Below, in pieces: positions 23,853 to 28,930 of a stretch of 64,000 nt of DNA. The stretch is from Klebsormidium nitens (lineage: Eukaryota; Plantae; Klebsormidiophyceae), in contig DF237204.1 in the NCBI GenBank assembly GCA_000708835.1, positions 1-64,000 of the forward strand, given 5' to 3'. How positions within the stretch are numbered: position 1 is the stretch's first letter; each line of letters opens with the position of its first letter. The position numbers and the translations under genes were made by a program. The notes under the pieces are model-generated. The model did no database searches. It was not told where the DNA came from and saw only the letters and a program-made list of their open reading frames with translations.

Positions 23853-24965
23853 TAGTGCGCGGTGCACGGAATTGCATTAACATACCGCTTTCAACATTCT
23901 GCAATACCGTATCCATGTCGAAGCTCGACATTGTGCGCCGCGCTCGGACAGGGCTCATTTCCGTGAATTCAGGTACAGGTTGAGGGAAACCGCTGACACA
24001 CAAATGAAGTTGTCATTCAGCGAAGCACAGGCCCATGGGGAGTGTACATGTATAGCATATGGCATGGTCGGACATATCGAACGCTGGCCGCCACCAAGTG
24101 TTGTACTCGATTTAAAGGACTTCGTCACCAGGTTTTTCTAACAATGAAAGTTACATTTAACAAGCTAGATCAGCCGTCCACGCAGGTACGTTCGTATATG
24201 CATGGATTTCCAGTTTTCAGTGCGTAGTTATTTGTTGATGGTGTTATACTTCGGTTGCGAGCTGAATGGTTTGGCTTTGATAAAGCAGTTCAATGAATTT
24301 GCCAGCGATAAGCCTAGAGAGTTTGAATTCGAGTTTTGTTTATTTTTTCAAGTTGATTATCGTTCTCACATTCAGGAAACATGATCAAACTTTGATGACA
24401 TATCCATAATTCATCTGTTGACGGACGGAGTACCATTCTTCATCACCAGACAAAGTATCAATATAATTTAGAAGCATCATTGTTTCAACCGATTGAATGT
24501 AGAAGGATAACATCAGCTAGACAATGAAGATGTCGTGGAAAAAACGAATCCCTTTTGAGAAAGATCGGTTGGTGTCAGGAGCACTTTCGAACTCCAAAAT
24601 TGTTTATCTACAAGATATGCTACAGATTTACCCAATTCCACGTCACTACTCTACACTTTGAGACCCAACACGTTGCGCAGGCTTTCCCGTTCGTGCTTAC
24701 AAATTTTCCGATTTTTCTACTTACTTCACATTGATCGACGTACACAGCTAATAACCATCACCCCGTCACCACCATGTTATGTATCACTTCAACAGGTCTC
24801 TGCTATACCACCTGTCCAACGGCACTGGCACTCGACAACACATCCTAGTCTGCAGAGAGTATTAATCTTTTACAACTTTATCCTTGCCCTTTTAACTGCC
24901 AAGTAGCTGCAACTGCCTAATTTGTTGCCATGGCACTACAGATTTCCACCTACCTAGCCAGTTCT

Positions 24966-27900
24966 CTAGTGGTGCCCAGTCAGCTTTTCCTCAATCTTCT
25001 TGAAGAAGCCTTTCTTCTCGTGGTGCTCGGTGGCAGCCGCTGTCGCACCCGCCTCGCCCGGTGCGGGACGCCCAGTCAGGTTAGGTGACGGACCCGGGTG
25101 AGTTGTCCCCGTGGTGTGAGGAGCCACCCCAGTTCCGGCCCCAGTCATATGTCCCAGACCGGTTCCGGTCATTCCGGTTCCGGTCACGTTGTGGCCAGTT
25201 CCCATCCCGGTGTGACCAAGTCCAGCGTCGTGGGACAGCGCTGTGCGACCGGTTCCAGTCACCGGGCCGCCCATCCCAGTTCCATAGCCGGTACCGGTCT
25301 GCGTTCCGGTCAATCCGGCGCCGCTCATGTGGGCGACTCCAGTTCCGGTTGTTGCTCCGGCCATCTCCCCGGTGCGGCGGTGCGACTTCTTGTGGCCGCC
25401 GGGCATCTTGGACTTGATCTTGTCGCCCAAGCTCTGTCCGCCTGCACCCTCCTCGTCGGAGGAGCTGCTGCTGGAGCTGCTGGAGCTTCCAGTCCGCTGG
25501 AGGCCGGTCGTTCCCGTAGTGCCCATCATGTGGGGAGCGCCCTTGTGCGTGTACTCGTCAACCTCCTGCTCGCAGTACCTGGAGAAGGGGGGAAGGGACG
25601 TGTCAATGGTGAGTGCATTTCGACGAAGCTGCACCACTCAAAAAGGACGACGAATTCTTGCAGTGAAAGCGAACTAGATTAGCGTTTAGTTGGTATGTGT
25701 TACTTCGGTTTCGCACATCATATGCTGAGCGGGCTCTTCGATTTCGCACTTCTTGAATTCAAAGGACAACGCATCGTCAATACGAGCCCGATCCAATCGC
25801 TATCGTTGTAGGGATTGTATCACCAGTACGCTCCCGTTACACATAAGGGTGCACTTGTGGGTAATTTATTGTTCAGAGAGATCCAAATTATGGGGACTCG
25901 AGGTTACACATTTTGTTCTTGAAACCGTCTTGTTCGTGGACAAGACTGTTTCATGATGGAGAATTCCGACGACAGTGAAAAGTTCGACCCGAAAATTGAT
26001 GAGAGGTGTTTTAATATTGTGTATCAGTTTCAACCAAGAAGCACCATTGGCCCGAACAAATGTGTGGAAACGCCCGAATTGGAGACTGATAAAAAAATGG
26101 TGCAAACACGGCCAAGAATTCTTGACGTTCGAAAAGAACCGCAAACTTAAGATGAACACATCAAACGATGGTCTGCTCAAAAGAAGAGCGACTGCCTGAC
26201 ACTCACTTGCCAGTGGGCACCTGCACCTGGCGCTGCACGGGCACCTCGGTCACATGGGGCACTCTGACGCGCTCCTGGACCTCCTCACGAACGACACGTG
26301 GCACTGTCTCGGTCTTGGTCACAGGGACCTGCTCCACGATCTTCTCAGTGTACGGGACTTGCACCCTCTCCTCGACCACACTGCAGGATATACGAGCAGT
26401 GGAGTTCATGCTTTCGCATCCAGATTTCTCGCAAAGTTCGTGATGAGGCACCGAACTGAAGCAAGTTGTATGTTGTCAATACCATTCAATGATTCTATGA
26501 TTTCTGCGCTCGGCAAATTTCCATCTTCAATTCTTAAAACTTCGAACATTTCCATCTTCAGATGTTCGAAGTTTGAGTTACTTCGAAGTCCAAAGGAGTC
26601 TACCACAGGAGTCATGGCTCCTTTCGGGGGCAAACACACATGCACGAGCATGGCAACTGGTACCTCAAGTATGCAGTGACAGTTCCGAGACAAATCAGGC
26701 ATTTGTGCGAAGCGACTGCTCGTTAAAGCGATCAAGAACTTTTCGTTTGGGTGGGTACTTCGAACGTCTGAAGTCGAGCGTTCAAAACTTATCATGAAGA
26801 GGTCTAACCAGCTGAATTCTGAGCATACGTGGTGGGCCACTACATGCGAAGTATCCAGCAAGAAACACGTAGGAGGTCCTTTTCTTGGACACTGCCAGGA
26901 GCCTTCCAAGAGAAGGCGTCTTAAAAATTCGCCTCACCGGTGGCGAATCTCCTCCCTCGTCCTGGGCACCTCCTTGACACGTGGCACGGTGTGGGTCACC
27001 TCCTTCTCTTCCTGCACCACGCGCGAGCGCGGCACAGTGCGCACCTCCTCGCGTTCCTCCAGCTTCTTCACATAGTCAGTTTTGGTCACAGTCTTCATCT
27101 CGGGAACCTTCTCGATGATGTTCACGTGTGTCTCGAACTCCTTAGGCTGCATATGGAAATGCGTTGTCAGTTTCTGTTCATTTTCTCTAAATACTTTCCC
27201 CTGTCTACTTCTCCTGATCATCTAAGACAGACAATTAAAAAACCTCTGACAAGAAGCAGAGGGAGGCGCAATTGCGGGGCAAACATGAAGCTTGCGGTTC
27301 AGAGTTTGACAGTAGAAGTAACTTGAGTGTGCATTCGCACTCTGATAAAACATCGGTCTCTCTACCAAGCAATTGCTATCTCATTCTGTCAATAGGAAAT
27401 TCCTATGCTATCCCTCCATCCCTTCCTGTCAGGAAACTTATCTCGTTCACATATGACCTTCCATACAAATGATATATTTCTCTTCATACCATGTGATTAA
27501 GTACAAGAGCTGTCATGAACCTTGCTTTCAGCGTCATGGGTGACATGGGTGAGTACTGGGAATTGCAAATTCTTTCTGCCAAACTTTGTCCAATTTTGAC
27601 AAAGTTACTGAACCTCTTCTTTCTAAGGTTCACTCATCAATTTGCACACGCTCAGAGACCCAACTTCCAAGAACCCCAGTGCCAATTGGTCGCGGCCAGC
27701 ATGCATACTTCAGTATTTGTCTGCACAACTGAAATGCAGCTCCAACATTGACCATGTCCAATTTGGCAGAGTAGAGGGACTTCTTAGCCATCTGTCAGTC
27801 CACCTGTCAGACTCCGTTGTGTGCTTGTAAGATACTCACCAGGTTTGTTGTGGCAGGGTTGGCGCAGTACCCCTCCGACTCCCCCGTGGTGCGGGTGTTG

Positions 27901-28010
27901 AAGCCAGTCCCCATCTGGCCCCTCCCCTGCTCCTCAAACCGGCCGGCGCCCATGTTGCCTGGGGCCATGTTTGCCCTCTCATAACCGCTCAGGTTCTCGC
28001 GCTGAGCCAT
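24966..28010 (-). CDS. Dehydrin-like (LEA2) protein with internal articulin/alveolin-like V/E/P repeat block; exons 28010-27840, 27146-26938, 26380-26207, 25578-24966 (~388 aa)
   Basis: The four exons join in phase (0, 2, 2) with GT-AG ends. The last exon has a Y-like segment (DEYTHK), an S-segment (SSSSSSSSSDEEG), two K-segments (SLGDKIKSKMPGGH; EKKGFFKKIEEKLTGHH*) and G/T-rich spacer repeats. Exons 2-3 encode EKVPEMKTV...VPRVKEVP...VQVPYTEKIVEQVPV...VPHVTEVPVQRQVQVP. Confidence 0.85.
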
Positions 28011-28659
28011 CTTGCAATTCGGGTGCTTCTTACAAAGGTGGAAGAAACTGTTGCAGCAGGTCGTTCGTAGCGAATTCAAGAGCTGCTAGCGGCTTCTGAA
28101 CGTTTTTGTATTCTTGCGACGTTGCTTCAATTGTTGAACGAGAACGTAAGGCAATTGGATTTTGCTTGGTGCCAGTACTGGTAGAAGTAGGTACCAATTG
28201 CAGGCTTCTGCGACTCTCTGTGCAATACACTCAACAGGAGGAAACAGGCTGGGTTGATGCGGATTGGGCAGCACAACCACGGGTCCTCGGCATTCCTGTT
28301 TTCTCACTGGCTGCATGGCGTGTATGATGCGCGCCTGGCTTTGCATGCATGGCAGCGCATCGCGACTTTATCTGATGTCACTGCCACTGACAGATCACAG
28401 GAACTCCCTCAGCAGGATTTCACCCGGAGGTCCAGGATGATAACACTCTCTGAGAAGGATTTTCAGGCGGGCCTGTACGTTGCGAATGAGCTCGTCAAGA
28501 AGAATTCACACTTGAGCTCTGGGCTTCGGTGTCTGGACGAAAGCCTGCCTCTTGAAGTGCCACCTGTCAGTGGTCCTGCCACTTGGCACGCTTCAGGAGC
28601 CTGAATCGCTGAGTCACTTTGAGCGGCGGCTGTGGCCGCCCGCGGCCCCGATGATGGAC

Positions 28660-28930
28660 ATGGTCACGTGCCTAGGCTGCCGTTGGTACCTACATATCAC
28701 GCGTTGAATCTCATATGCGGCCGCGCAGCCTTAGGCTAAGTTGCCGCCCGGGGTCGCAACCCGGCGCGCCACAAGAAGCTACAGTACCGGTGGTACGGTA
28801 CGTACGTGCGGCCTGATCGAGCCTATGTGAGCCTACGTGAGCATGCCAGCTTATTGATGCTCGGAAACCGGCGGCGGCCCTGATCCTGACTACCGTATGT
28901 TTGAAAGCACAAGGAGTCAGGACGTGCTCA
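28660..28930. promoter_or_regulatory. ACGTG (ABRE/G-box core) cluster upstream of the dehydrin-like gene
   Basis: CACGTG 28665-70; ACGTG at 28804, 28835 and 28922; GC-rich tract 28621-28650. Confidence 0.4.

Follow-up and report, generated by a model that had tools for sequence, protein, structure and literature searches.

Dehydrins are typically disordered over their whole length, and genes of the SKn type usually carry an intron within the S segment. In streptophyte algae no dehydrins were listed in a 2020 review (PMC7289719), and a 2025 survey, which claims the first confirmed green-algal dehydrin sequences, did not find the Y segment in algal dehydrins (PMC11763121, Biomolecules 2025). 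The same survey classed GAQ85800.1 of Klebsormidium nitens as an SK2 dehydrin and scored its C-terminal EKKGFFKKIEEKLTG as a K segment; it is the sole paper naming this protein, and it leaves unmentioned a repeat block rich in Val, Pro and Glu that precedes the dehydrin part. Repeats of a similar composition have been described in alveolins, articulins and plateins, whose defining trait is a 12-residue tandem repeat (PMC4303705), and in the epiplastin class, which has a medial domain of low complexity (V, E, I, K, Q, P), acid-base dyads and a predicted beta or coil structure (PMC6212826). Here we analyse the gene of GAQ85800.1, kfl00255_0070 (protein KFL_002550070), which lies on the minus strand of the first 64,000 nucleotides of K. 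nitens contig DF237204.1 (assembly GCA_000708835.1), hereafter the window. Dehydrins are the textbook wholly disordered stress proteins, and the Klebsormidium dehydrin described here is half of a larger, deeply conserved architecture, the other half being an unnamed domain common to Klebsormidium, mosses and liverworts, which is probably ordered.

One transcript joins the repeat block to a dehydrin tail

We placed transcript contigs from four public runs (X3, X7, X8 and X15) on positions 24300-28700 of the window. Single spliced contigs from three studies, X7 rec9 (1812 nt), X8 rec11 (1673 nt) and X15 rec1 (1682 nt), each span all four exons of kfl00255_0070, joining 28228..27840, 27146..26938, 26380..26205 and 25576..24535, with CT..AC at every joint so defined (GT..AG on the minus strand), and they omit exactly the three introns listed in Table 1. 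Since each of these contigs runs through the whole set of exons, the repeat exons share one mRNA with the dehydrin exon. The start codon is the ATG at 28010, which opens a 57-codon exon closing on a GTGAGT donor, and the frame is maintained across exons 2-4 via two split codons. The four exon translations, together with R127 and K185, agree letter for letter with the 388-aa database protein annotated 'hypothetical protein KFL_002550070 [Klebsormidium nitens]' (P0001), which we retrieved by a word search with the stop-free open reading frame (ORF) 24969-25637 and used for all whole-protein analyses. The original prediction, made from the letters of the window alone, had proposed a Val/Pro/Glu-rich repeat block fused to a dehydrin tail in one gene, with both repeat exons spliced to 25578; its exons, phases and splice sites all agree with the spliced contigs from the three studies, so that the alternative of separate genes for the two parts fails, and the block itself turns out to be undescribed.

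The tail exon alone matches the Pfam dehydrin family PF00257 with 40.4 bits, above the gathering cutoff of 30.6 bits, and the whole protein does so with 36.5 bits. We required for dehydrin membership a K segment judged against the consensus EKKGIMDKIKEKLPG and an S segment, that is, a Ser run followed by acidic residues. The tail contains such a Ser run, and it contains K segments in the near-canonical 15-mer EKKGFFKKIEEKLTG and in LGDKIKSKMPG. The tail exon is thus a true dehydrin, with one S and two K segments, and this status was already known. The proposed Y-S-K2 order stands for the S segment and both K segments, but its Y segment is weak: VDEYTHKG agrees with the Y consensus (V/T)D(E/Q)YGNP at 4/7 positions, and the bryophyte relatives described below have GEFVNPG in its place. 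A Y-like motif in Y-S-K order is therefore possible.

The gene is strongly expressed in unstressed cultures. Its level was 804 fragments per kilobase per million (FPKM) in low light and 244 after high light, and that of its paralog kfl00107_0210 was 4995 and 1381, respectively (PMC9121098 Table S1); given the low-light values, both transcripts are very abundant without stress. In addition, kfl00255_0070 is induced within 1 h by 100 uM indole-3-acetic acid with or without cycloheximide, and KnRAV activates its promoter (PMC10272232). The palindromic GCCACGTGTC with its ACGTG core occurs once in exon 3 (26293-26302) and once in exon 2 (26976-26985). We rejected these cores as promoter abscisic acid-responsive elements (ABREs), as they are codons of the repeated VPRV motif. 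Over the whole window the ACGTGKC word is enriched (25 found versus 13 expected; 0/100 shuffles reach 25). Pfam searches of seven neighbouring ORFs within 19-36 kb returned nothing.

A conserved 28-residue repeat domain in Klebsormidium, mosses and liverworts

Word and profile searches gathered 63 clusters of relatives. The named members include three K. nitens paralog types, Physcomitrium patens XP_024389754.1 (LOC112289052), at least six Ceratodon purpureus genes, Ceratodon M758_1G058200, Marchantia paleacea Mapa_000695, Riccia fluitans R1flu_023906 and a protein of Riccia sorocarpa; all are annotated as hypothetical or uncharacterised, and these searches found no vascular-plant protein among the relatives. 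Literature searches by accession of the moss and paralog members returned no paper citing them, and searches on MpDHN and PpDHNC returned no link of named bryophyte dehydrins to the block family. The common architecture runs from a disordered head rich in Gly, Thr and His through the motif TGESEAYCPNP to the block, the junction PTG.YCE and a Y-like motif; 65 of 86 members add a Ser run with acidic residues, and 59 of 86, under a loose pattern, a C-terminus that is K-like, basic and amphipathic. The original prediction had placed the module in an alga-like streptophyte; the architecture is not peculiar to this alga, as mosses and liverworts share it.

The block of KFL_002550070 comprises 127-129 residues, of which V makes up 23%, E 18%, R 12%, T 11%, P 9% and K 9%; these six residues amount to 82% of the block, and some 39% of its residues are charged. 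Autocorrelation in four members peaks at 28 residues (z 5.3-7.3), whereas lag 12 in the KFL_002550070 block is at background level (z 1.4), and the middle 127 residues of this protein correspond to 4.5 copies of a 28-residue repeat. We counted block lengths (PKEF to PTG) and proline parity in the 86 proteins whose block is complete. Of these, 74 have a block of 127 aa and 12 one of 183 aa (127+56), no further length occurring, and the prolines all fall on a single residue parity in every one of the 86, the chance of this for 11 prolines in one sequence being about 0.001. Hydrophobic residues occupy 27/64 positions of the non-proline parity and 13/65 of the other parity. Between alga and bryophytes, column identity averages 59-60% and 35-38 columns are invariant (38 in an 11-sequence block alignment); Ceratodon P0013 and the K. 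nitens paralog kfl00107_0210 have the three introns at the same positions as kfl00255_0070. Since length, proline parity, sequence and intron positions are all conserved, the block appears to behave as a folded or otherwise strictly constrained module rather than as a drifting low-complexity linker. Pfam searches with each exon, the block and seven relatives matched Dehydrin only, a PDB sequence profile search gave 0 matches at E<=10, and an ESM Atlas feature search with the block gave scores of at most 0.78, which is the noise level. Per-region identities from global alignments are uninformative for the low-complexity head and tail.

The bryophyte members share the four-part architecture of KFL_002550070, those of Ceratodon also its exon structure, and their blocks are 47-57% identical to its block over the full length; their tails, in contrast, are shorter, with one often truncated K-like end, and are mostly unrecognised by PF00257. 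The liverwort members end in KRKKKSLLKRIEEKIVG, and the moss C-termini are short (KKRGLLNKILHH). Within K. nitens, the paralog kfl00107_0210 (KFL_001070210, P0081) and the SK1-type transcript P0011 agree with KFL_002550070 in head motif, block, PTG.YCE junction and intron positions, and both are likewise very highly expressed. They differ from it in that kfl00107_0210 contains two further 28-residue repeats, lacks an S segment and has RRGLLGRLIGA as a degenerate C-terminal helix, and in that P0011 has one K-like segment. In kfl00107_0210 the additional 56 residues are a pair of exons duplicated in tandem (18+38 aa), that is, 2x28.

Several side observations concern these relatives and the transcript contigs. 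The gene kfl00107_0210 (L003 3001-6181, DF237056.1) is flanked by a histone H2A gene and a PEMT/ICMT-family gene. Two contigs, X3 rec7 (1553 nt) and X8 rec12 (1552 nt), match short bits of exons 2 and 4 of kfl00255_0070 (26941-26979, 27130-27147 and 25162-25184) and then diverge; they probably represent the SK1-type paralog P0011 (contig 1552 nt), expressed in the same cultures. Run X3 also contains low-depth contigs across 25579-26206, 26381-26937 and 27147-27737, with a word depth of 14-57 versus about 1400-2300 on exons, which could be unspliced pre-mRNA or DNA carry-over. The 212-aa protein P0056, from a Logan transcript contig of 915 nt, begins with the K-like MEKIKEKL, continues with a block of about 70 aa closing on VPTGDY and ends in a Gly/Thr/His-rich tail; it is a short variant, possibly from another streptophyte alga. 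Three divergent Ceratodon proteins, P0034, P0064 and P0039, have a His/Gly-rich head and a Cys-rich C.C.C...C.C stretch before the block and no K-like end, and make up a second subfamily of the block domain.

A predicted beta-ribbon and its alternatives

We modelled the block region of KFL_002550070 with AlphaFold2 from an alignment of 21 sequences and obtained one giant antiparallel two-stranded beta-hairpin, with a mean predicted local distance difference test score (pLDDT) of 81.6 (87-90 in the block) and a predicted template modelling score (pTM) of 0.37. Its strands, at model residues 28-85 and 89-148, correspond to residues 69-126 and 130-189 of the protein, and the predicted turn coincides with the exon 2/3 junction, so that each strand is encoded by one exon. 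The 183-aa paralog is again modelled as one hairpin (strands 27-110 and 118-203, pLDDT 77), the turn of which would be displaced by about one 28-residue repeat while the conserved ends still meet. In a crude score of cross-strand complementarity, the register i+j=176 comes second in the range i+j 120-230 and leads once registers of fewer than 50 pairs are set aside, with 148 (=176-28) next after it, and this lends weak backing to the register in which the strand ends meet. We are moderately confident of the hairpin fold as predicted.

On balance we lean towards the view that kfl00255_0070 encodes an abundant dehydrin-class stress-protection protein, in which an ordered beta-ribbon rod of 28-residue repeats carries a Y-like/S/K tail, although its function is something we infer. 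The product would probably be cytosolic and consist of two unlike halves. The block would fold back into a single two-stranded antiparallel beta-ribbon about 19 nm long, exon 2 supplying one strand and exon 3 the other, so as to bring the YC.NP of the head motif and the PTG.YCE at the start of the tail together at the open end of the ribbon. The two faces of the ribbon would be unlike, one Val-rich and the other charged, and, from the geometry of beta-sheets, the single-parity prolines would occupy outward-pointing NH positions. Prolines so placed would keep the ribbon from growing sideways into a sheet, and it would therefore serve as a stiff rod or spacer, or as a module of face-to-face self-association. 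The ribbon may thus present a Y-like/S/K tail that would be disordered and phosphorylatable, with amphipathic K segments that, by analogy with other dehydrins, would bind membranes or proteins on dehydration.

A number of points weigh against this view. As to stress protection, expression falls 3.3-fold in high light, a scan of the kfl00255_0070 promoter for the ABRE-like ACGTGKC found no element, and the literature yielded no desiccation or cold data for this gene. As to the fold, the predictions draw on only 17-21 fairly similar sequences and have a low pTM (0.30-0.37), and alternating repeats tend to be drawn as long hairpins by AlphaFold2. For the whole protein the ESM Atlas gives a poor model (pLDDT 0.48), structure neighbours from the Atlas reach a template modelling score (TM) of at most 0.25, and no solved structure matches the hairpin model (Foldseek against the PDB, VIA-align wide), the best hits being generic long hairpins with Z 3.2 and TM <=0.21. 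A shape search of the Atlas returned weak bacterial models and nothing informative. Moreover, the first Cys of the putative 'clasp' is Ala in several mosses, and an isolated 19-nm two-stranded ribbon may be unstable alone, in which case pairing could be between molecules.

Part of this evidence would fit another explanation, which we consider unlikely: the block would be a disordered, highly charged low-complexity spacer, an entropic linker of the PEVK kind, and its alternating pattern would have misled AlphaFold2 into drawing a hairpin. Disorder throughout is typical of dehydrins, the high proportion of charged residues suits such a spacer, and so do the low pTM, the low-confidence ESM Atlas model and the lack of a PDB match. 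However, linkers drift in length and sequence, yet the block comes exclusively in the 127-aa and 127+56-aa forms, its only length change being a whole duplicated exon pair; its proline parity is perfect in all members, and its alignment keeps 38 invariant columns. The ordered rod remains the reading that we prefer for the block.

The origin of the tail invites a different objection, to which we give a similarly low probability, namely, that the family consists of independent beta-repeat proteins that are not dehydrins by descent, with a convergent Ser run and C-terminal amphipathic basic helix, and that only the K. nitens subclade happens to pass the Pfam threshold. Indeed, most moss, liverwort and paralog members score 14.6-18.9 bits with PF00257, below the cutoff, or have no match, the moss C-termini are short, and a search with the tail found no land-plant dehydrin at E<=1e-3, which agrees with PMC11763121. 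On the other hand, K segment 2 is close to the canonical 15-mer, the Y-like motif, the S segment with its acidic residues and K segment 1 stand in the canonical Y-S-K order, the liverwort members end in KRKKKSLLKRIEEKIVG, and PF00257 is present in some moss members (P0115, P0117 and P0138).

A further step is decidedly speculative, and we think it somewhat less likely still. The Y-like/S/K tail exon of the alga-bryophyte family might be the ancestral form of dehydrins, having been the disordered tail of a beta-ribbon rod protein in the streptophyte ancestor, and the fully disordered dehydrins of land plants might have arisen through loss of the two rod exons; the rod would then be a new module, a proline-edged two-stranded ribbon with a length set in 28-residue steps. 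The block family offers in any case a new angle on the origins of dehydrins and on losses in vascular plants, and the block a concrete structural module and a candidate route for the display or multimerisation of K segments. The features of the gene are collected in Table 1.

Table 1. Features of kfl00255_0070 in the window, in the direction of transcription
Feature	Position	Strand	Evidence or remark
Transcript kfl00255_0070 / KFL_002550070	24535..28228	-	5' end ~28228, 3' end ~24535; spliced contigs X7 rec9, X8 rec11, X15 rec1
Exon 1, coding part: 57 aa, Gly/Thr-rich disordered head, phase 0 end	27840..28010	-	
Head motif TGESEGYCANP (family consensus TGESEAYCPNP), immediately ahead of the block	27855..27887	-	alignments A1/A2
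Intron 1, phase 0, before PKEFET	27147..27839	-	spliced contigs
Exon 2: 28-residue repeat block, first half, P58-H126 + 2 bases of R127; predicted beta-strand 1 (residues 69-126)	26938..27146	-	
Intron 2, splitting the Arg codon after His126	26381..26937	-	spliced contigs
Exon 3: second half of the block, V128-G184; predicted beta-strand 2; predicted turn R127-V129 at the exon 2/3 junction	26207..26380	-	
Intron 3, splitting the codon between PTG and YCE	25579..26206	-	spliced contigs
Exon 4, coding part: 203 aa + stop, dehydrin tail	24966..25578	-	PF00257
Y-like segment VDEYTHKG, residues 191-198	25539..25562	-	weak: 4/7 positions of (V/T)D(E/Q)YGNP
S segment, ten Ser then DEE, residues 216-228	25449..25487	-	
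K segment 1 LGDKIKSKMPG, residues 235-245	25398..25430	-	inside Pfam stretch 204-268
K segment 2 EKKGFFKKIEEKLTG, residues 372-386, C-terminal	24975..25019	-	quoted for GAQ85800.1 in PMC11763121

Comparison with described systems

The original prediction had likened the block to articulins and alveolins and pictured a module of the epiplastin type that would polymerise as a membrane skeleton at the cell cortex and bear membrane-binding K segments at its tip. The block does resemble alveolins, articulins and plateins in several respects: charged residues, Val and Pro are frequent in it (V, E, K/R and P), it has VP motifs and acid-base dyads (12 in the 129 block residues versus 5 in the other 259 residues), it is predicted to form beta-strands, as the epiplastin class requires (PMC6212826), and its flanking domains give a head/medial/tail layout similar to that of epiplastins. 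The block thus shares the composition, the dyads and the beta prediction of epiplastins, but it differs from them in its fixed sequence and length. No epiplast or alveoli are known in Klebsormidium, mosses or liverworts. Neither the exons nor the block nor the whole protein matched the alveolin/articulin family IMCp (PF12314) even at E<=10, and none of the ESM Atlas shape neighbours belongs with IMCp; IMCp searches of green algae had likewise come out empty (PMC6212826). The block-family profile (A1, HMMER), run against 1.84 billion representative proteins at E<=0.001, returned 50 matches with no alveolin, articulin or platein among them, the named ones being from Klebsormidium, the moss Ceratodon and the liverwort Riccia. 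Three long multi-stretch A1 matches, P0026, P0042 and P0052, proved on reading their sequences to be unrelated repeat proteins. With no sequence or profile similarity found, a fixed and short length (127 aa) and a period of 28 residues instead of the 12 published for these proteins (PMC4303705), kinship with the cortical skeleton proteins is improbable, and we regard the likeness as an analogy at most, confined to composition and predicted beta structure.

Among solved structures, the hairpin model finds its only likeness in the long stems of lysenin, aerolysin, the anthrax protective antigen (PA) pore and phage tail proteins, which are likewise very long two-stranded antiparallel hairpins. 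The resemblance does not amount to a fold match (TM <=0.21, Z <=3.2), and hairpins of that kind occur solely within oligomeric barrels; for KFL_002550070 there is no hint of a role as a pore or toxin.

The closest described systems are the SKn dehydrins (PF00257; LEA, or late embryogenesis abundant, group 2), with which KFL_002550070 shares the poly-Ser stretch with acidic residues, the two K segments and a Gly/Thr/His-rich hydrophilic spacer. Two differences set it apart from them. Unlike the usual SKn gene, interrupted within its S segment, kfl00255_0070 has its dehydrin tail entirely within one exon, and, ahead of this tail, the protein adds a conserved 127-aa repeat domain of predicted beta structure and a head motif that have been described in no dehydrin.

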